Sequence record: NC_061440.1
Strand: one strand, 5' to 3'
DNA: 64,000 bases
The notes beneath the pieces were generated by a model. The model did no database searches. It was not told the DNA's origin and saw nothing but the letters and a program-made list of their open reading frames with translations. Position numbers and translations under genes: made by a program. Positions 3,306-14,063 of the stretch are shown here, piece by piece. Numbering within the stretch: position 1 is the first letter of the stretch; the number at the start of each line of letters is the position of its first letter.

Positions 3306-4334
3306 TTATTCCTCCAATACGCCACTAATCTCCGCAAACATATTTTTGTACACTAAACTCCCACCAAGTTTGTCCAATCTGTCCACCAGCACATATAGCT
3401 TCGGTGTCGTGCGCATGTTAGCCCACGTCTTCTCGTTCGGGTCGAGTCCGCCTACAGTAGGCACAATCACCAGACTGAGGTTTTTATTGGCTCGAACGAA
3501 ACCGATATCCAGATGCGTCCTGTTTATAGTCCTGATAAGCCTATTGATTGCGTCCAAACCAACAGGCTTGTTGAATTCCGTATCATTGACAGTGTTGACC
3601 AAACTAATGAGAATTCCTTTGTCTTTCGTGTCGATATCAAACAGGTCTGCTTTCAGATCTGCCACAGTCGATGCCGAGAAGTATGACACGTCGTGGTTAA
3701 GATCTTTCAGGCAGGAACCTAAGGCACGCGCCGATTCGATGTGAGCCACGTTGTCATCCCGAAGAATATACACAGGCGCATCTGGCTGGTGGGTGCGTTT
3801 CGATATCAAATCAATAAGCTCGCAAGAGGGTCGACCAACAGTAGCCAGCCCCTTGTTAGCAATATAGAATTTGTCACGATACACGTCATATATGTTAGGA
3901 GGCATATACTTCATGTAGTCATCGTCCAGACTAAGAATCATTCGGGGCTTAGTTAATTGAACGACCAACTGCATACTACGGAGCGAAGCCTTGTACTCTG
4001 TATCGGAAAGCACACGGCTAATCGGCAGATACTGCACAACCACAAAGCGTTCGTCGATTGAGTCAACGACAGACCGTATGAGTGTGCTGCCTAATGTAGG
4101 TCCAGCAGAGAACTGGGTAACGATCATCAAACTGCCTGCGACCAAGCTACGTGTCTTAGCTACCGTCTGACCGCTACCCAGCTCGACTACGGAGGACTCC
4201 CACGTTAAGGCTGGATCGTCTCGTCCGCTATCGGCATGTACATAAGCTGCGCTACACCAGAGACAGGCTCCAAGAATGTAAGCAGCAATACGTTGTCCGG
4301 ATCGGCCTCTGCTGGATTGACCGTTTCGGGCCAT
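3306..4334 (-). CDS. Secreted periplasmic-binding-protein-like (ABC_sub_bind / sensor-kinase input-type) domain protein (342 aa)
   Basis: AGGAG SD upstream of ATG 4334. Arg-rich n-region, h-region IAAYILGACLWCSAA and YVHA|D cleavage site. LMIVTQFS...VVVQYLPISR...KPRMILSLDDDYMKY resembles the VLILHSY...EYLD.KR...KPDLII..DD.A pattern of PBP-type input domains of histidine kinases and diguanylate cyclases. Confidence 0.6.
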   Translation of the reverse strand: MARNGQSSRGRSGQRIAAYILGACLWCSAAYVHADSGRDDPALTWESSVVELGSGQTVAKTRSLVAGSLMIVTQFSAGPTLGSTLIRSVVDSIDERFVVVQYLPISRVLSDTEYKASLRSMQLVVQLTKPRMILSLDDDYMKYMPPNIYDVYRDKFYIANKGLATVGRPSCELIDLISKRTHQPDAPVYILRDDNVAHIESARALGSCLKDLNHDVSYFSASTVADLKADLFDIDTKDKGILISLVNTVNDTEFNKPVGLDAINRLIRTINRTHLDIGFVRANKNLSLVIVPTVGGLDPNEKTWANMRTTPKLYVLVDRLDKLGGSLVYKNMFAEISGVLEE

Positions 4335-5032
4335 AGCACTTCTCCTCTCTCGTCAGTGACGTAAGGAATGCCGGCGCCTTTACCCAATCCGTGTCGTAAA
4401 GCCCAAACAGTGTCGGCATTCTCCTGCACGAACACTAACCCTTTGACTTGCACATCGGACGTTGCATTCTCCAGTACCTCAACACGCTTCTCAAGAAGCT
4501 CGGCATCGGATTGCAGCACACGAATAGCAGACAGGTTAGAGTTAACGCGCTGGTTCATGTTGTTGAACATGGTGAAGAACGAGTTGTTCATCGCCGTGCG
4601 AACGCCGTCCGTATAGGACTTTGGAATTAGTTCATCGTTGTCAAACGTTGTTACGCCTGTACGCGCGAGAACTTTACCGGTAAGACGTCCACCACTTGCG
4701 CTGATAATCTGAGGAGCAGGCAAATCAGCCTCATCCCAGATTTGAACAGTGGTCATCACCGTATTGTAGTCGGTCTCTTCCTGCCACGTATTCTTATACG
4801 GTGCAGTAGCCGTTTTGGACTTACGACGCATGACTTTCTTATAGCCAGCGTTCGATCCATCGGCGATGATCCAGAGACCGTTCAGTGGAAATACGTGAGT
4901 AATAGGTTCGGCGAACGAAAGAATAATCGTAACGTCGGCGCCTACCTTGTACGCAATATCGTTCGACGCAGAAAGCCCTTGCTGTTGAGCAAGAGCAATC
5001 AGCGTGTCCACGTAGTTAGTCAACTGGCTCAT
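4205..5032 (-). CDS. Virion structural protein (275 aa)
   Basis: SD upstream. Coiled coil followed by a C-terminal W.LRHGLG...VTDERG...LLLTFLEPVSG.A module paralogous to the C-terminus of the 541-aa protein. Confidence 0.75.
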   Translation of the reverse strand: MSQLTNYVDTLIALAQQQGLSASNDIAYKVGADVTIILSFAEPITHVFPLNGLWIIADGSNAGYKKVMRRKSKTATAPYKNTWQEETDYNTVMTTVQIWDEADLPAPQIISASGGRLTGKVLARTGVTTFDNDELIPKSYTDGVRTAMNNSFFTMFNNMNQRVNSNLSAIRVLQSDAELLEKRVEVLENATSDVQVKGLVFVQENADTVWALRHGLGKGAGIPYVTDERGEVLWPETVNPAEADPDNVLLLTFLEPVSGVAQLMYMPIADETIQP

Positions 5033-6539: not shown

Positions 6540-9416
6540 TTACTCGATCTCACTCGGTTCCCAGCACAGAATTGGGCGGCGCCATACTTGGAACACACCG
6601 ATAGGCGAAGCACGGCCAGAATCAATGAAGCAGTCCATAGTTGTACCACCAGAGTTACCGCTCTGCATAAGAGTTTGCAGGTTAGCAATCCAAGAAGCAC
6701 GTCCACCAGAGTCTGCCTCAAACAGTCCTTCCCACACCATATCAAAAGCACCGTTCCATGCGTTGAAGTGGTGAGAAGAATACGCACCATCACCGACTGA
6801 ACAAAGAACCATGTACTGGTAATCTTTGACGCAAGGAATAGCGTAGTTATTGCCGCGCGGAACTGCTGTACCGTTGTTATTAAAGATACACTCCCAGCCA
6901 GTACGATCAGCAGCACCAGTAGTTAAGAACAGAGGACGACGAATGATCATCATAATCCCGTTCTCACCGCCATTGTTGCTGGACTTCTCGCAGTACGCAT
7001 TACAACGTAAGGAACGGTCCACAGTGAATGTGGTTGAGTTTGAGAAGTCACGGCAGTAGTAGTTCGATCCCCACTTAGGCAGATATTCTGCTGGTGGTAC
7101 AAAGAAGTGACGCTCCGCAAGTTCGATCTCACCGTAACGGTCGTAAGCAAATACAATGTACTCGTAGCCCGCCTCAATCTGAATGTTGTGGCCTTGACTG
7201 CCGATACCATTCCACTTCCATACAACCTGCCAATCGTTCGTATCACGTTCAGGCATTTCGGTAATCAACTGATAAGGACGCTCATATACGTGCCACACCT
7301 TCCCTTCTTCTGTCGTGTTGATATACAACGAAGAAGGGTCATTGATGTTGCCGTTAGACGTACCACAATAAACTTTATGCGATGCACCAGCAGAGTTGTA
7401 GATAGTGCCTGAGCTTACAGACTGGAACATGTCCCAGTTCATCATCAGGTGCGAGGTACACATTTCATTCTGGCCACTACCATCAGAGGTTGTGAGCAGG
7501 TACTCGTTGAGGTCTTTGAACGCATAGCGCACATAGTTAGAGCCAGCACGGTTAACGCGGTGTACCCAGTCATGCGATTGAACTTTCGGCACAGGGAAGC
7601 AAGGGTTAGTGACAGACACGACGAAGTTTTTAGTTTCGTACATCGGCAGTTTCTTGAAGCGGTTATCACGAATCGTTACCGTGTGCTTCATGCCATATGT
7701 CTGCGCACCATCCATACCGCCCAGCACTTTGTAGTACGACTCATGCGCACTCTTGGTGTTTTCGTACAGACTAGTGATGCCAAGCCCAACGTTGCCGTCA
7801 CGGTCAGTGCCGCAGCAGAAGGGCACGTTACCTGAATCAAAGTCAAAGCCAACAGAGTAATAGCTGTCAGGTGAACTTGATTTAGGGCCCCAGTAGAGTT
7901 CGGTGTAAGCAGAACCTTCACCGATACCCGGCTCACCGAACACGCAGTATGCAGCACGATACACGTACTGACTGCCCTGGAACACACGGCGCGATGCACC
8001 AATGCGATACATAGCAGCAGGAAGGCCACCCTGAACACGGTTAACGTCAGCCGTATCATACGACACAACGAAGACATAACAGTCGGTGCCGATTGAGTTG
8101 AGGAACGCAGCACAGGCAGCAGCGTTAGTTGTACCTGGAGCTGTACCTTCGGCCGATGCGTGAATGTCAAACGAGCGGCGCTCAAGCAACGCAAGGTCAG
8201 ACTTACGAATCTTATAGACGTTCAGGCCACGCGTATCTCGGTACGTCACACCATTATAGACAGTGTAGCCATAGTCACCAGTGTCTAGGTAACGCTGATA
8301 ACCAACTACGTGCGAGAACAGTTTACTACGTGCTTGCAGCGACTGACCATTCTGATTCGACCAACTGACCGACACATCACCAGCAGCCATACGTGCTGCC
8401 CAGTCATCAGGCTTGTATGGGTATGTGGTAACATCGAAGTTCACACCGTACGCGGAGCCTGGCTCTACGCAGCATGGATTGCGATAGATGATTGGTGGAT
8501 CAATCACTATGTCATCAGGAATATCGACTTGACCGCAGTACAGTTGCTTCCACGTACCAGGCTGACCTCCGAGCGAACTAGGTCCCGCAGCAGGTGTTGT
8601 GTTGAACTGATAGATAGCAGACGTGCGATAGTTAATCTGATTGTGAAGCTGAGGAACGTTCGTCCACGCAATGTGATTACCGAACGAGTTAATGCTTTTG
8701 TCGTGTGCTGCAGGAGTCGAGACAACATAAGCCTGACCGTTACTGCGAATGCCGAGTGGGTTGAAGATAGCGTTGAAGTTAACGTTACCCTCGTAGGCAT
8801 TCTTCTGCAATACAATCAGGTGGACTCCGTTGCGGTGAGCTTCACGTAAAGCAGTGAGCATCGCTGTAGGCATACTCTGGTTAGTCGCAGACAACAGCAG
8901 CATGACACAACTGAACTGTTTGAAGTAACGGTAGTCGCCGTTGTACCCGTAAGCGCCTGCGTTAATCTCCTGCCAGCTATGCGCTAACATATCGAGAGGC
9001 ATACGCTGCATGTAACCAACGAGCTGGCCCCATGATTCCATTGCTGTGTCGTCGTTGACAGGAGCAAGGTCGGAGATGACCAACATCGTACTGCCGTTTG
9101 TAATGTTTGCGTTGAAGCCACGCTGGGTCAGCAAATGGCGGAACACACCCATGTTGTTGATAGACTTGTTACGGTAGTTGCCCATCCAGCCGTAGTTTGA
9201 ATCCACAAGAGGGCTACCGTCTCGAACAAATCGACCATTCATATAAACAGAGGCAAAGCCGCAGACGTATGCTTGCGCGTGTCCGTCCACTACGAACGAA
9301 GTAAAGCGGGAAGCATCTACCGCCATCGCATTAACAGCAGCCTCAGAGCCATTGCCGGGACTACCACTAAACACAGGAGTGATGCCTCGTGCGTACAGGC
9401 AACTTTGTTGCAGCAT
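6540..9416 (-). CDS. Fibre / receptor-binding protein with ILEI (PANDER-like) domain (958 aa)
   Basis: AAGGA SD. RGLNVYKIRK...RSFDIH...AAFLNSIG...VFVVSYD...YRAAYCVFG matches the ILEI carbohydrate-binding-like domain. Three aromatic-rich repeats near the C-terminus. Confidence 0.7.
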   Translation of the reverse strand: MLQQSCLYARGITPVFSGSPGNGSEAAVNAMAVDASRFTSFVVDGHAQAYVCGFASVYMNGRFVRDGSPLVDSNYGWMGNYRNKSINNMGVFRHLLTQRGFNANITNGSTMLVISDLAPVNDDTAMESWGQLVGYMQRMPLDMLAHSWQEINAGAYGYNGDYRYFKQFSCVMLLLSATNQSMPTAMLTALREAHRNGVHLIVLQKNAYEGNVNFNAIFNPLGIRSNGQAYVVSTPAAHDKSINSFGNHIAWTNVPQLHNQINYRTSAIYQFNTTPAAGPSSLGGQPGTWKQLYCGQVDIPDDIVIDPPIIYRNPCCVEPGSAYGVNFDVTTYPYKPDDWAARMAAGDVSVSWSNQNGQSLQARSKLFSHVVGYQRYLDTGDYGYTVYNGVTYRDTRGLNVYKIRKSDLALLERRSFDIHASAEGTAPGTTNAAACAAFLNSIGTDCYVFVVSYDTADVNRVQGGLPAAMYRIGASRRVFQGSQYVYRAAYCVFGEPGIGEGSAYTELYWGPKSSSPDSYYSVGFDFDSGNVPFCCGTDRDGNVGLGITSLYENTKSAHESYYKVLGGMDGAQTYGMKHTVTIRDNRFKKLPMYETKNFVVSVTNPCFPVPKVQSHDWVHRVNRAGSNYVRYAFKDLNEYLLTTSDGSGQNEMCTSHLMMNWDMFQSVSSGTIYNSAGASHKVYCGTSNGNINDPSSLYINTTEEGKVWHVYERPYQLITEMPERDTNDWQVVWKWNGIGSQGHNIQIEAGYEYIVFAYDRYGEIELAERHFFVPPAEYLPKWGSNYYCRDFSNSTTFTVDRSLRCNAYCEKSSNNGGENGIMMIIRRPLFLTTGAADRTGWECIFNNNGTAVPRGNNYAIPCVKDYQYMVLCSVGDGAYSSHHFNAWNGAFDMVWEGLFEADSGGRASWIANLQTLMQSGNSGGTTMDCFIDSGRASPIGVFQVWRRPILCWEPSEIE

Positions 9417-9459: not shown

Positions 9460-11478
9460 TTAGTCGAATACTACGTTTGTGATTGCGATGTAGTCCATGT
9501 TGATACCATCACCCCTATCCCAACCAGACGACACGTACAGCCAAATCTCTTGACCGACAGGTACGTCTACGTTTATCGTGTAGGTCTGGATCGCGGTGTT
9601 GTTCAGTGGATGGAAGACATTGTTCGGCGCACTGCGCTCGTACCAATCAAGGCCGCTATGCCATGAACCCTGTCTACCTGAGTAGCGAATATCAACAGTG
9701 ATTTGAGTAATGCGGCGCGTGAAGAAGTTGTTCCATTTGAACCAACCTTTCGAGCCACCCCAAAGAACACCGTAGTCACCGTCAGGCGAACGTACCTGCG
9801 ACCAGAAGTCACCAAAGCCACGACCACCAGTATGTTCAATCTGATAGCAGTACCAAGGGAAACTATCTGCAACAGGAGGCTGTGCGTTGTCACCTTCAAT
9901 CGTCACACAACGATAAGGAACCGTGAAGTCACTAACGTTGATATGCGGCGGCTGAATAGGACAGTACACATAGTACGACCAATCACATCCGATAGGTGCT
10001 GTCACGCGTACAGTGATGTTAGCGCGAAGCACATGCTCAGGGTATTTCCAAAATTCGAGTGTACCAGTTTTCCCAGCTACAACGATTGACGTATCAAGCA
10101 GGTTCATGTTCTGGTCAAACACTTCAAACTTCGTATCAAACGAATTGGCCACACAAACAATAAGCTGTGCGCGAATGTCCGTTTGAGTTCCTAATGCAAA
10201 ATTATCTTCTGTAGTTGGATGCCCGGCAGAGTACACGCTGTAACTCTGACATGGGTGCATAAACTCACGCGCACCACGTTCACCAGGACAGTACAGGCTG
10301 TAGAAGCAACTGGCAAGCGATGCAGCGTTACCGAAGTCCTTGCTAACCACACGCACCATGATATCACACGCAACACCTTTCGGGTCGAAGTAGAAGTACA
10401 GGTAACCTTCTCCCGTCTGTGCGTCAAGTGTTGTTGCGATACGTCTGCCTGATTGATAGACCTCGATGAAGTCGAAGGTTTCCCATGACGTGTAATCGAG
10501 ATACATCCAGCCAGCTACCCAACCTATGAAGTGATAATACTCAAACGCGTTCGAGTTCTGAATGCGTTCTGTAATCGGCCAGACAGTTGCATGACAAGGT
10601 GCCGGGAAGATAGGGCTACCGATATAATCTGGATGAATGACGTCAGGGAAGTTGATAACGTCATACGCTGCCTGACTATCGAGAGCTAATCCACCACGAT
10701 CCGAAGGTGCTGCAAGACGAGGCGGATAGACTTCTAAGCTCCAGCTATAGCCCTGCGTAGTACGCACACGCACCATGATACGCATATCAGCAGCGTCAGG
10801 GTCAAACTGGAACTTGATACGCGAACGACCAACAACCTTACCGCATGTCGAAGCAACACGCACACCCATGTGGTACACGTCAACGCTTGCACCCGCAGGA
10901 GCATACGATGCAATCATCAGCTCCACGTAGCCTTCAACAGCAGGCATTGCGTAGATTGTTTCAGTGATTGTTGCACCACGACCATGAGTGGACGCATACG
11001 GAACGTTAGGGTTAGCATATGTGCCAAGCCCTGAACGCGAGGCCACGCCGACAGGGTCGTAGGTCTCAATAGTCTTAATACCAGGGCGATTGATAGATCG
11101 TCCAGTAGGTGGAGCAAATGAGTTAACAAGGCCGAAGCCAGTACGCCCAGCATCAGGCAAATCAAAGCCAGCAGGATAGCCTTTAAGAATATCATACTTC
11201 TCACGACCACCTGAGCCGATGCCATTACCAGAGCCTTTAGTTGTCGATGTAGGACCGCCGCCACACGCACCAGTTTCGAGATTCGAACAAGGGTCATCGT
11301 AAGTGGGATCGAACGAGTCATCAATTAGATGCCAGCGTTGACCCCACTGATTTCTGACGCTGAACTTCTCAGGAGTAAGAGGAGTCCAGTCACCTTCTTG
11401 TGTGCGTATGAACATAGGCGTGTCAACACAATCGTGCCAACCGTTATTCGCAGCATTACGAACGCGAAAACGTGCCAC
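9460..11478 (-). CDS. Virion structural protein with three repeated beta-sandwich modules (672 aa)
   Basis: GTG start after AGGAG. Repeated pattern (G..EL.IASY...S.DVY..G.RVAST / GWMYLDYTSW...D.IEVYQSG.RIATT / AQLIVC.A...T.FEVFDQ) with RVRT/RVVS/RVTA closing strands. Confidence 0.75.
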   Translation of the reverse strand: MARFRVRNAANNGWHDCVDTPMFIRTQEGDWTPLTPEKFSVRNQWGQRWHLIDDSFDPTYDDPCSNLETGACGGGPTSTTKGSGNGIGSGGREKYDILKGYPAGFDLPDAGRTGFGLVNSFAPPTGRSINRPGIKTIETYDPVGVASRSGLGTYANPNVPYASTHGRGATITETIYAMPAVEGYVELMIASYAPAGASVDVYHMGVRVASTCGKVVGRSRIKFQFDPDAADMRIMVRVRTTQGYSWSLEVYPPRLAAPSDRGGLALDSQAAYDVINFPDVIHPDYIGSPIFPAPCHATVWPITERIQNSNAFEYYHFIGWVAGWMYLDYTSWETFDFIEVYQSGRRIATTLDAQTGEGYLYFYFDPKGVACDIMVRVVSKDFGNAASLASCFYSLYCPGERGAREFMHPCQSYSVYSAGHPTTEDNFALGTQTDIRAQLIVCVANSFDTKFEVFDQNMNLLDTSIVVAGKTGTLEFWKYPEHVLRANITVRVTAPIGCDWSYYVYCPIQPPHINVSDFTVPYRCVTIEGDNAQPPVADSFPWYCYQIEHTGGRGFGDFWSQVRSPDGDYGVLWGGSKGWFKWNNFFTRRITQITVDIRYSGRQGSWHSGLDWYERSAPNNVFHPLNNTAIQTYTINVDVPVGQEIWLYVSSGWDRGDGINMDYIAITNVVFD

Positions 11479-11487
11479 ATGTTCTCC

Positions 11488-11979
11488 TTATGGGCGAACC
11501 CAGATTGCGCCAGGTGCGATCTCATTATCAATGGCAGGGTCAGTGTCTTGAACAAACACCTGTACTGCACCAGGATTACCGGGAGCACCTGTTGCGCCAG
11601 TAGGACCAGTTGGACCGGCAGGACCACGATTACCCACATAGCCCTGTTTACCCATCTGACCATCAGAGCCACGAGGGCCTGGGCAGCCGTCAGTACCGCG
11701 ACGACCATCGTTACCCATGAGACCGTCGATACCGTCACGACCAGAAGGACCAACACCACCAGCAGGGCCATAGCCTATGCTGTGAATGGTAGGCAGTCCA
11801 GCAATCTGCAACTTACCAATCGACGGGATATTCAGAGCAAGCACACCCGTAAGAGCATCAAACGAACCGTTGAGTGTGCTGTCATCTTCGGCAGTGTCTA
11901 CTGTCAGACCGCCTTGAGTCGCTACGACAGGACCAGATGCGTTGGTCTTGACTAGCGCTATATCAACTTTTTCTACCAT
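11488..11979 (-). CDS. Collagen-like fibre protein (163 aa)
   Basis: FD..TG.L.L...GLPT head, Gly-X-Y triplets with GCPG, C-terminal VFVQDTDP...GAIWVRP. Confidence 0.85.
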   Translation of the reverse strand: MVEKVDIALVKTNASGPVVATQGGLTVDTAEDDSTLNGSFDALTGVLALNIPSIGKLQIAGLPTIHSIGYGPAGGVGPSGRDGIDGLMGNDGRRGTDGCPGPRGSDGQMGKQGYVGNRGPAGPTGPTGATGAPGNPGAVQVFVQDTDPAIDNEIAPGAIWVRP

Positions 11980-11988
11980 GATTACTCC

Positions 11989-12621
11989 TTACGGCCAGGT
12001 AGTGCCTTGATCTTTTGTCGGGTCAACCCAGATTGTTCCAGCGGCAACTGCGCCCGGCTGGGTAGCACTCACGATGATAGACAGACGGCCAGCAGGACCC
12101 GCTGCACCAGTAGGACCAGTAGGACCTGTAGCGCCAGTCTTACCAGTAGGGCCTGTGCCACCACGAGGACCAGTAGGCCCTGTAGGCCCCATAGGACCTG
12201 TGCGACCGTCTGGGCCAGTAGGACCAACAGGTCCAGGCAGACCATCACGGCCATCAGGACCGGGAATACCCTGCTCACCGTCAGGGCCTATCTCACCGTC
12301 ACAGCCCTGTTCACCAGGATTACCGTCACGCCCATCACGACCGTCTTTGCCGTCTGCACCAGTTTCACCACGACCACCCTGACGACCTTCTGGTATGTCA
12401 GCAGCAGTAGGGAAACCATTGACCTTAACAGTCTGTCCGTTAGCAAACTTGAGCGTCAGAATACCGCTGGTGGCATCGAACGACGAGTCGGCAGTAAGCT
12501 CGGACGGCACGTCTGCATCAGAAGGATTGATAGTCAGCGTACCGCGCGAAGCTCTGATTGGAGTGGGCGTAGAAGACGAACCCGCTTGAATGAGGCCCGT
12601 GTTTACTTTAATCAGACCCAT
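11989..12621 (-). CDS. Collagen-like fibre protein (210 aa)
   Basis: Same head motif, long GPT-rich triplet run, C-terminal VSATQP...GTIWVDP. Confidence 0.85.
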
Positions 12622-14063
12622 TACGTTTTCTCCGCTTTAGCAACGATATCCGTATTGTGCACCAGCACATCTCCTACGAAGTAACAGTCAAACGGGTCAA
12701 CATCTATATCAACCGTCTGCACTTGCTCATCAACGCGAACAAATTCAGATACAGCGATAGGTCCTTTACGACCTAAGACAGTTTGACCAATACGAACGTC
12801 ACGCGCAGGAACATAGCGCCATACGGACTCATCATAAATCAATACTGGGTGTTCGTGAGTGAACTTTTGACCGTTGATCACATAGTAATGATCTTCTTGG
12901 CCGAGCTTCAACGCTTTCACCGCAGCGTACACGGTGTTGCCTTTGAGACTAGGCGAAGACCAATTACGAAACTCCTTAGGCTGGTTCGAGTAGCCAAGCA
13001 GCGCATCGCCGACACGCAAGTTCTCTACAGCTTTAGGACCAACGATAGTGTTCACGGTACTGCCAAACACGATACAGCCAGATGTTGCAGTGTTGATAGG
13101 GTTACGCGCCACGACAGTCAGAGCAGAACGCACCGTAACAGTCGGACGTGATGGTTGACCCATATCAGTTACGAGACAGCTAATGGTGCCTTTGATCGAA
13201 CGATCAGCACCTAAGCCTAAACGCAGATAGAAGTTGACAATGCAGGTATTTGTCTCGACAGCATCAAGAGTCACACCCTCTGTGGTCGTGATAGTCCATT
13301 TGTACTTATACGGACCAACGCCACCACGCGCATTGACAGGCAGATACGCCAACGAAGTAAACACATCAGAGCCTTGCACTGTACGTTGACCTACCATGTA
13401 CAGATTAGACACTGACGCAGCAAGAGGTGTGATTGTAGGCAGAGGCGGCGCAGGAGTAACGTTGGCTGTAGGGTACAACCAGACGAACACTTTACCGTCT
13501 GTAGGCTGTGTGCTCGATAGCACTGCTGTAGTGATAGGCGCTGGCCCAGTAGCACCCGTAGCACCAGCAATACAGCTAGGACCATCGTTACCACGAGGAC
13601 CGATAGGCCCTGTAGGACCCGTTGCGCCGTCAGGACCAGTAGGACCGTCAGGACCTTGACGCCCAGTGTCTCCTGGAGGACCGTCTTCACCGTCACGTCC
13701 AGGGTCACCTACAGGACCAGTCTTACCTCTATTGCCTACACCGCCCGGACAACCTTGTTTGCCGGTCTCACCATCACGCCCGTCACGTCCATCTCGACCA
13801 GGAGAACCTGGAGCGCCTCGACGCCCAGGTTTACCTTCGCCAAACATCGCAACAGTGGGCAATCCAGGGATGTTCACCACATCCCCGTTCTGCTTGATGA
13901 ATACCAACACACCTGTCTTGCTGTTAAATCTTACGCTGGCGAGCTGTGTTAATGTTGCCACATCGGAGTTTTCAAACTTAGCCACTCCGTCAACACCGAT
14001 CAATGATTTACCTTCATCGTTCGGTGTTGTTTCGACTTGCGAAAGTTTTAACTGTGTTGTCAT
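12621..14063 (-). CDS. Collagen-like fibre protein with C-terminal Hint (intein-like) domain (480 aa)
   Basis: Gly-X-Y region followed by a beta-rich domain. Then G|CIVFGSTV...[10 protein letters not shown] (Hint block A), FTHEHPVL (block B, T..H), [31 protein letters not shown]|T (blocks F/G). Confidence 0.85.

Follow-up and report, generated by a model that had tools for sequence, protein, structure and literature searches.

The window analysed here, a stretch of 64,000 nucleotides, matches the Erwinia jumbo phage pEa_SNUABM_22 (NC_061440.1) at 100% identity. On its minus strand lies MPK63_gp112, a gene that RefSeq labels over its whole length as 'virion structural protein' and whose product matches phrog_38766 end to end (E 6e-260). 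The protein runs from its N-terminal domain through 29+3 collagen triplets and an Ig-like sandwich to a linker of 8 residues, the Hint domain (141 aa) and a tail of 10 residues (Table 1). Two shorter collagen-like paralogues are encoded downstream, gp111 and gp110; they match the first ~200 and ~146 positions of phrog_38766, respectively, and have the N-terminal domain in common with gp112. This domain is probably the end that attaches to the virion.

Table 1 Features of the gp112 locus, in window positions.
Feature	Residues	Position	Strand	Basis and remarks
Whole gene MPK63_gp112	480 aa + stop	12621..14063	(-)	Collagen-like fibre precursor, 50.3 kDa
N-terminal beta-rich domain	1-73	13845..14063	(-)	Strands in AlphaFold model
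Collagen-like region	77-175	13539..13835	(-)	Pfam Collagen, E 7e-14; translation
Ig-like beta-sandwich	210-321	13101..13436	(-)	AlphaFold, pLDDT 76-93
Linker P-I-N-T-A-T-S-G	322-329	13077..13100	(-)	Translation
Hint domain, 141 aa, 15.8 kDa	330-470	12654..13076	(-)	Pfam, PDB search, Foldseek, AlphaFold
Cys330 (Cys1)	330	13074-13076	(-)	Straight after ...TATSG; translation of 13074-13100
Block-B T402-H-E-H405	402-405	12849-12860	(-)	Translation
His469-Asn470	469-470	12654-12659	(-)	Followed by ten-residue tail and stop; translation of 12621-12659
C-flank	471-480	12624..12653	(-)	Thr471 at +1, Lys476, invariant Lys479; translation, column counts
Shine-Dalgarno GGAG of gp111		12630..12633	(-)	Within Ala-Glu codons of the gp112 tail; sequence

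An earlier, sequence-only reading had described the protein as a collagen fibre, in agreement with the Pfam match and with 29 unbroken G-X-Y triplets (residues 77-163), after which Cys164 takes a Gly position and three more triplets follow. Both cysteines of the region, Cys105 and Cys164, are invariant columns among orthologues. The Ig-like sandwich would be the final domain of the mature fibre. The linker closes with Gly329, which takes the -1 position of the predicted scissile or thioester bond and is present in 31 of 32 orthologues; Gly is also the commonest residue at this position family-wide (94 of 194 domains).

AlphaFold models the Hint domain as a compact single domain (pLDDT 92, pTM 0.86). 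Its length of 141 aa, the compact model and the lack of an extra Pfam match show no endonuclease insert, and no further Hint domain of the same family was found elsewhere in the window. The domain had been recognized in the sequence-only reading with these same limits and without an insert, and models and Pfam bear this out; the Cys1, THEH, penultimate His and terminal Asn named there are found in the translation, and both positions and residues agree with the open reading frame and its translated junctions.

The top PDB sequence match is 2lwy, a BIL domain (E 1.4e-5). A Foldseek search with the Hint model also returns 2lwy first (E 4e-9, TM 0.71/0.81, 25% identity), followed by the BIL2 domain of the Tetrahymena BUBL1 locus (6y75/6tmm; TM 0.71-0.75, 16-17% identity); Hedgehog 1AT0 reaches TM 0.65/0.71. 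Every one of the best 50 PDB matches listed (all E <= 4.6e-4) is a Hint domain of a BIL, an intein or a Hedgehog protein, and the BIL domains 2lwy and 6y75 outrank inteins and Hedgehog among the PDB matches. In Pfam, gp112 aligns to positions 2-136 of the 137 in the PT-HINT model (PF07591), with a score of 23.2 bits that lies below the Pfam cut-off of 27.7. The evidence supports a BIL-type Hint domain at the end of gp112, unlike a classical intein within an enzyme core. A classical class 1 intein was rejected on several grounds: the domain sits in a fibre protein, behind a variable linker, and contains no endonuclease; outgroup orthologues have Ala, Val or Met at +1; and the ten-residue 'C-extein' is missing from a Hint-less allele.

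Nine phage orthologues and 23 database orthologues (n=32) have Cys1, T-x-x-H and His-Asn without exception. Over 194 related domains the catalytic set is ~98% conserved, with Cys1 in 169 of the 170 aligned, Thr and His of block B in 174 each, the penultimate His in 190 and Asn in 189. The +1 residue is Thr in 28 of the 32 orthologues and Ser, Ala, Val or Met in one each, and NCTB has Ala; only 13 of 116 distant terminal relatives have Ser or Thr there. Thus the +1 Thr, counted earlier among the splicing residues, is present here as Thr471 but is not a conserved requirement. Purifying selection acts on the Hint domain (dN/dS 0.07-0.12) as on the remainder of the gp112 gene (0.10-0.17), and synonymous sites are saturated between the lineages that kept the domain. 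Any nonsense mutation could have removed this terminal appendage; that it was nevertheless retained argues for a benefit.

The ten-residue tail falls within a family-wide range of 1-12 residues. A lysine occurs within +1 to +10 in 110 of 116 terminal-Hint tails, against 27 expected, and stands at +1 in 54 of 72 internal Hint copies. So near-universal a flank lysine is a new sequence rule, unexplained by current intein and BIL mechanisms. The tail has a further constraint, a point that the sequence-only reading had missed: the ribosome-binding site of gp111 overlaps it, and the gp111 ATG (12619-12621) overlaps the gp112 stop (12621-12623). The stretch GCGGAGAA is invariant in eight jumbo-phage orthologues, with adjacent codons varying synonymously, and dS is 0.13-0.6 in the tail versus >1.2 in the Hint domain. 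The tail is therefore conserved in part because the gp111 ribosome-binding site lies inside it.

In Dickeya JA phages, the syntenic orthologue JA29_099 (324 aa, 50% identity) is without a Hint domain. It stops seven residues ahead of the Cys1 position, directly after the Ig-like domain, and has no C-extein at all. Ending where it does, JA29_099 indicates that the functional fibre is the N-terminal part.

An exhaustive phmmer search (E<=1e-3) found 540 relatives. Among the 148 nearest distant cluster representatives, 116 have His-Asn and a short tail as the end of the protein; none of these 116 ends exactly at Asn, so that all retain a scissile bond behind it. The same cap follows collagen, Ig, fn3, PKD, BACON and tail-fibre N-terminal parts. 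Of 77 relatives checked by Pfam, only 13 contain collagen and 50 match PF07591 (E<=1e-3). The gene neighbourhoods of three terminal-Hint relatives are all phage tail or baseplate modules, and on contig L015 an S74-bearing fibre gene adjoins the gene of a terminal-Hint protein. Capping of a gp109-like protein is confined to NCTB and contig L012; a free-standing Hint gene likewise occurs in NCTB, and free-standing HNH endonuclease genes lie in the same gene clusters. Tandem HN-K-G(n)-C arrays are seen in other phage proteins.

A search for related loci with the orthologue alignment retrieved the close jumbo-phage clade only, plus one distant match, and when a distant terminal-Hint protein was compared with deposited phages by tblastn, only the gp112 jumbo-phage clade and NCTB matched. 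The Hint cap appears to be widespread in uncultivated phages and nearly absent from well-studied ones, perhaps the reason why it has escaped notice so far. One GenBank record already notes an intein domain. In the literature on BIL, Hint or intein domains with phage, tail fibre or collagen, we did not find the family-wide terminal-Hint pattern described; the Dickeya and PaBG phage papers make no mention of a terminal Hint domain. The phiCbK paper deals with ordinary terminase and RNR inteins.

The invariant catalytic set, purifying selection and a Hint-less orthologue ending at the junction make self-processing, already proposed in the sequence-only reading, the best reading of the locus. We put at roughly 0.6 the probability that the gp112 Hint domain is a self-removing end module resembling A-type BIL domains. 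The domain, its fold, conservation, selection and distribution are observed; its cleavage, the products and the purpose of cleavage we infer from the conservation pattern. In this scheme, the last 151 residues of a 50-kDa precursor would form a self-processing module of the A-type BIL or PT-HINT kind. Cys330, assisted by Thr402 and His405, would attack the carbonyl of Gly329 in an N-S acyl shift, leaving the fibre with a C-terminal thioester; Asn470 would then cyclise with the help of His469 and cut off the ten-residue tail. Hydrolysis of the thioester by water would give a mature fibre of residues 1-329 (33.5 kDa). Alternatively, with Thr471 at +1 here, the tail could be transferred onto Gly329 in a 339-aa product of 34.5 kDa. 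Under either outcome, the 15.8-kDa Hint domain would leave. BIL domains mainly yield N- and C-cleaved products, and a +1 nucleophile turns them into efficient splicers (PMC7664689, PMC7765530).

The working fibre would then comprise the N-terminal domain, the collagen rod and an Ig-like tip, the same extent as the Hint-less Dickeya JA orthologue. As to its role, the Hint domain may cap the fibre's distal end transiently, while the fibre folds and assembles, and so be a functional analogue of the unrelated S74 chaperones. The likeness to S74, drawn earlier, is reasonable in position, and the S74 fibre next to a terminal-Hint protein on contig L015 agrees with it. The trimerisation chaperone suggested along with it is not supported: the cap also sits on Ig, fn3, PKD and BACON hosts, collagen is found in few relatives, the JA fibre is without a cap, and no Hint domain is known to promote trimerisation. 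That JA phages make their fibre without the cap also counts against the reading as a self-removing module.

The lysine of the tail invites a different outcome. N-side cleavage by Hedgehog proceeds without His-Asn and a lysine tail. Simple removal alone would not call for a strictly conserved His-Asn and a lysine-bearing tail; that both are conserved counts against it and suggests a chemical part for the tail. The Gly329 thioester could be resolved by an amine, rather than by water or the tail's own alpha-amine. This might be the epsilon-amine of a tail lysine from the same or a neighbouring trimer chain, a lysine in some other virion protein, a small amine of the cytoplasm or a host-surface group. 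Such a reaction, a covalent coupling through the thioester as the sequence-only reading had also proposed, would leave the fibre tip cross-linked or modified, in the manner of Hedgehog with cholesterol and of ciliate BUBL proteins with lysines. We hold this to be unlikely, even if the family as a whole retains both centres of cleavage and one or more residues beyond Asn, the lysine excess in tails and at +1 of internal copies fits it, and the second-best fold match is BUBL1 BIL2, from a family whose BIL domains are proposed to conjugate the ubiquitin-like domain to lysines. AlphaFold gives the tail low confidence with both shallow and deep alignments, and in its models the tail does not sit at the active site; the lysine could have other uses, for instance as a charged residue or in making Asn cyclisation efficient, its codons lie within the spacer of the gp111 start region in the jumbo-phage clade, and the Hint-less JA orthologue works without such a link. 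Somewhat more doubtful still is the specific form in which the Hint domain and lysine tail make up a self-sufficient, enzyme-free ligation device of the virion. Asn cyclisation and the Gly-Cys thioester would jointly shift the C-terminal carboxyl of the fibre to a lysine, be it in the protein's own tail, in an adjoining chain or in a different virion protein. If true, it would give isopeptide-capped or cross-linked fibre tips, and the tandem HN-K-G(n)-C arrays would be polymerising versions.

Equally doubtful is that the Hint domain stays on the virion fibre as its distal domain, either as a binding module or as a latent switch that cleaves only on an extracellular trigger or one at the surface of the host. 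The distal position of the Hint domain, the sharing of the gp112 N-terminal domain with its paralogues and the RefSeq label of the whole gene would suit a retained tip, and Hint cleavage, as for inteins in general, can depend on conditions. However, the Hint surface shows no unusual variability, unlike a receptor-binding tip, and identity between orthologues (66-82%) is comparable to that of other gp112 domains; conservation of the full catalytic set and a JA orthologue without such a tip also speak against retention. The least probable account, in our estimate, is that of a selfish passenger: a degenerate, mini-intein-like element spread among fibre genes with no benefit to the phage and kept only as loss of self-cleavage would spoil the fibre. 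It would explain the patchy occurrence of the cap (absent from JA, on a gp109-like protein only in NCTB and L012), the free-standing Hint gene of NCTB and the HNH endonuclease genes of the same clusters. Against it stand a domain without homing endonuclease, an insertion site that is not conserved, a Hint-less allele with no C-extein, and the retention of the cap, with a dN/dS of ~0.1, in deeply diverged phages and on many unrelated proteins, even though one stop codon at the junction would remove it.

Two routes of maturation are known for phage fibres, one by separate chaperones and one by self-cleaving S74 chaperones. To these a self-removing Hint end-cap would add a third of different chemistry, with a reactive thioester stage at the tip of the fibre, and the mature receptor-binding proteins of cap-bearing phages would be ~150 residues below their annotated length. 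A natural 141-aa Hint domain with a minimal C-flank may also offer a ready-made example of a C-terminal thioester generator. Its recurrence on many unrelated phage tail proteins points to an unstudied maturation or chemical activation of fibre tips.

Among known systems, S74 chaperones resemble the self-removing cap in function and position only: they are self-cleaving C-terminal modules of phage fibres, absent from the mature protein and found at the same position in the gene. S74 is a trimeric Ser-Lys protease, and Hint a monomeric single-turnover thioester domain; the two have no relation in sequence or fold, and gp112 has no S74 match in Pfam. Hedgehog/Hog (1AT0) shares with gp112 a C-terminal Hint domain on a cargo and a Gly-Cys junction, and its thioester releases and modifies the N-terminal part. 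It has a sterol-recognition extension that gp112 lacks and is not known to have a conserved terminal His-Asn, whereas relatives of gp112 keep His-Asn (189-190 of 194) and the scissile bond after Asn. The ciliate BUBL BIL domain (6Y75/6TMM) likewise has Cys1 and a terminal Asn, and its thioester is proposed to pass to an amine; the transfer to lysine in gp112 would be a hypothetical counterpart. It differs in being eukaryotic, in flanking a ubiquitin-like domain and in its low identity to gp112 (only 16-17%). Pretoxin-HINT (PF07591) of polymorphic toxins is the Pfam family matched by most gp112 relatives; there a toxin domain follows, whereas gp112, which scores below the cut-off, could release a decapeptide only.

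The closest likeness is to A-type BIL domains, reportedly described by Amitai et al. in 2003 and Dassa et al. in 2004, with the structure 2LWY said to be that of Aranko et al. in 2013. They are the best match of gp112 in both sequence and structure (2lwy), and have the same Cys1, T-x-x-H and C-terminal His-Asn with no endonuclease. Like gp112, they reside in variable surface-type proteins rather than in a conserved enzyme (PMC7765530, PMC7664689). The +1 residue speaks both ways: it varies among relatives, and A-type BIL domains lack a conserved +1 nucleophile, but gp112 itself has Thr at this position. Those A-type BIL domains that have been described are bacterial and have a further protein domain as their C-flank, whereas the Hint domain of gp112 stands at the end of a phage fibre with a ten-residue, lysine-bearing flank.

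The C-terminal domain of gp112, the collagen-like fibre protein of Erwinia phage pEa_SNUABM_22, is a real Hint (intein-like autoprocessing) domain, with the bacterial intein-like (BIL) branch nearest. The sequence-only reading had described 141 residues without an insert and named the splicing residues, and translation of both junctions and of block B bears this out: 13074-13100 encode the linker end T-A-T-S-G and Cys330, 12849-12860 encode T-H-E-H, and 12621-12659 encode His469-Asn470, Thr471, nine further residues and the stop. Pfam matches are weak (PT-HINT at 23.2 bits for a cut-off of 27.7; Hint_2 over the first 47 residues). The assignment comes from a PDB sequence search, which found the Clostridium thermocellum BIL domain 2lwy over the full Hint length (E 1.4e-5), and from an AlphaFold model of the domain built from 53 distant relatives (pLDDT 92, pTM 0.86). 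With this model, Foldseek also placed 2lwy on top (E 4e-9, TM 0.71/0.81), followed by the BIL2 domain of the Tetrahymena BUBL1 locus, then by mini-inteins and Hedgehog 1at0; the ranking was unchanged with the full-length gp112 model.

Across 2.8 kb around gp112, the window matches this phage with 100% identity. The phage is an Alexandravirus of 265 kb and belongs to the 'hairy' jumbo myoviruses, and gp112 lies within a series of tail and fibre genes, every one on the minus strand. We drew the domain layout of gp112 from the full-length model and alignments. Its N-terminal domain is common to the three consecutive collagen-like paralogues, and in each of them a single Cys stands near the start of the G-X-Y run; in gp112, Cys105 and Cys164 of the run are both invariant. 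All this suggests disulfides between chains, and perhaps trimers of mixed composition. The window's 958-aa protein barely exceeds the Pfam cut-off of 27 for ILEI (interleukin-like EMT inducer; 27.2 bits), and its counterpart in Dickeya phage JA29 is annotated ILEI domain-containing. Free-standing HNH endonuclease genes occur inside the fibre gene clusters of the window and of Yoloswag.

Features of the gp112 region and of the comparison loci (L numbers; other nucleotide positions are those of the window)
Feature	Position	Strand	Remark
HNH gene MPK63_gp104	~4205-5032	minus	
HNH gene, Yoloswag	L003:4663-5520		
958-aa protein	6540-9416	minus	
gp109	9460-11478	minus	672 aa, no Hint
gp110	11488-11979	minus	shorter collagen-like paralogue
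gp111	11989-12621	minus	shorter collagen-like paralogue
gp111 start region	12619-12633	minus	inside gp112 tail
gp112 (MPK63_gp112)	12621-14063	minus	annotated 'virion structural protein'
gp112 tail	12624-12653	minus	follows Asn470
780-aa protein		minus	tail/fibre run; weak tail-collar fibre match
Two large proteins		minus	complete the tail/fibre run
gp112 N-terminal domain	residues 1-73		beta-rich
gp112 collagen-like run	residues 77-175		29 unbroken triplets, Cys164 in Gly position, 3 further triplets
gp112 neck	residues 176-209		short
gp112 Ig-like sandwich	residues 210-321		confidently modelled
gp112 linker	residues 322-329		eight residues
gp112 Hint	residues 330-470		
gp112 tail	residues 471-480		
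JA29_099	L018:3473-4447		Hint-less orthologue, 324 aa
BN7874_135, NCTB	L017:1198-1659	minus	153 aa, Hint-like
gp109 homologue, NCTB	L006:1311-5438		terminal Hint
gp109 homologue, 311-kb metagenomic phage contig	L012:12606-16232		terminal Hint
Terminal-Hint context 1			311-kb jumbo-phage contig, gene order as in window
Terminal-Hint context 2			siphovirus-like: very large protein, NlpC/P60, 1192-aa terminal-Hint protein
Terminal-Hint context 3	L015:6541-9089		myovirus baseplate set: Peptidase_S74-matching fibre, then 362-aa terminal-Hint protein
Tandem-Hint protein P0065	L019:6001-7806		

The domain was found in 57 deposited phage genomes, almost all of the Alexandra, Sasquatch (Y3), Yoloswag and Rivs genera; the remainder include Yersinia phage fHe-Yen9-02, phage NCTB and the Alcaligenes/Salmonella phages Afa-NA1/Sen-NF. 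Across 32 orthologues (9 from phages, 23 from databases), Cys330, Thr402, His405, His469 and Asn470 are invariant, and Gly329 is kept in 31. The first residue after Asn470 (+1), which had been counted among the splicing residues, is Thr in 28 and Ser, Ala, Val and Met in one each, and the NCTB orthologue has Ala; the splicing nucleophile thus appears not to be a conserved requirement. Calculated by domain, dN/dS is 0.07-0.12 in Hint; over the entire gene it is 0.10-0.17.

Among viral models, a structure search picked out a 324-aa protein from Dickeya phage JA13, labelled 'putative tail protein'. The syntenic JA29 gene, JA29_099, is 50% identical to gp112 and has the N-terminal domain, collagen run and Ig-like domain with no Hint, ending one residue past the conserved A-R-N-P motif and seven short of the Cys330 position. 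Elsewhere, every detectable homologue of the Ig-like domain retains its Hint. By this gene comparison, the JA29 orthologue shows that the functional fibre would be the N-terminal 320-330 residues, and Hint an accessory end module.

An exhaustive phmmer search with a 159-residue Hint piece against 1.84 billion cluster representatives gave 540 matches at E<=1e-3. Among the best 148 outside the orthologue clade, 116 have His-Asn at most 30 residues from the C-terminus. Tails of 1-12 residues follow in 100 of these 116, and none ends exactly at Asn; their +1 residue is Ala in 23, Lys in 21, Val in 11, Ser in 10 and Leu in 9, with others beyond these (Ser/Thr, 13/116). Across 194 aligned related domains, no fewer than 174 have each of the catalytic residues Thr, His, His and Asn, and Cys occurs in 169 of 170 aligned. 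The N-terminal parts are mutually unrelated: collagen (13/77), fn3, Ig, PKD, BACON, Calx-beta and tail-collar fibre. Gene neighbourhoods were inspected for three terminal-Hint relatives, and each of them lies in a phage tail module; in L015, two different putative self-cleaving end modules adjoin in the last genes of the baseplate module. The two Hint-ended gp109 homologues, in which 7-8 residues follow the Hint, are several hundred residues longer than gp109 of the window. In NCTB, BN7874_135 is a free-standing gene directly after the Hint-ended gp112 homologue and ends in His-Asn-Lys-Val-Asp.

Lysine marks the flank. It occurs within +1 to +10 in 110 of the 116 terminal-Hint tails among relatives P0023-P0170, where the Lys content of these proteins (3.8%) would predict 27. 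It is the penultimate residue of 36% of the tails; for 94 control ORF ends taken from those loci the figure is 2%. Most internal Hint copies belong to tandem arrays, in which Lys-Gly(n) linkers connect three to five Hints (such as P0118, P0041, P0029 and P0065), and 54 of 72 internal copies carry Lys at +1. One tandem protein is encoded on a 69-kb phage-like contig, with RNA ligase, PNKP, CCA-adding and queuosine genes as neighbours.

The gp112 tail conforms to this rule through Lys476 and Lys479. It is more conserved than much of Hint, with Asp472 and Lys479 invariant in 32/32 orthologues and Glu478 in all but Afa-NA1, and its AlphaFold confidence is low. The gp111 ATG overlaps the gp112 stop, and the GGAG ribosome-binding site of gp111 falls in the Ala-Glu codons; eight jumbo phages share the GGAG-bearing stretch without change, while adjoining codons differ synonymously. 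Synonymous divergence is 0.13-0.6 in the tail, against more than 1.2 in Hint, because the gp111 start region lies inside the tail. Judged from these codons, tail conservation is in part at the nucleotide level. In Afa-NA1 the ribosome-binding site is 3' of the stop, and the tail sequence differs with lysines still present.

The presence of Hint in this phage group is not new, since the GenBank record of Y3 reads 'contains intein domain' and NCTB carries comparable labels. We found nothing in the searchable literature that describes the architecture seen across the family or its setting in phage tails, nor the orthologue without Hint or the lysine rule.

From the established chemistry of Hint domains and the conserved residues, two events are predicted for gp112: an N-S acyl shift between Gly329 and Cys330, and cyclisation by Asn470. 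Since +1 is Thr in pEa_SNUABM_22, the decapeptide might be transferred onto Gly329. Outgroups with Ala, Val or Met would probably undergo cleavage alone, or ligation via the freed alpha-amine; the title of Aranko et al. 2013 (cited by PMC7664689) names the latter mechanism. By every route Hint would be removed, leaving a product of the same extent as the JA orthologue; the precursor has a predicted mass of 50.3 kDa, residues 1-329 one of 33.5 kDa, Hint one of 15.8 kDa and a spliced product one of 34.5 kDa.

A useless terminal appendage would be lost by any junction stop codon, and Hint is retained under purifying selection and on many unrelated tail proteins, which argues for a benefit. The trimerisation-chaperone role proposed in the sequence-only reading loses strength in view of the hosts without collagen and the Hint-less orthologue; we infer that the simplest benefit would be to cap the distal tip transiently while the fibre folds and assembles. 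Three strictly kept features speak against simple removal of Hint: the His-Asn pair, the scissile bond that follows it, and a lysine in the tail. The thioester may thus instead be passed to an amine.

Altogether, the comparative evidence supports the proposal that gp112 is auto-processed, with Hint as a probable self-processing end module of BIL type. According to reviews, BIL domains yield chiefly N- and C-cleaved products, and splice efficiently when given a +1 nucleophile (PMC7664689; PMC7765530).
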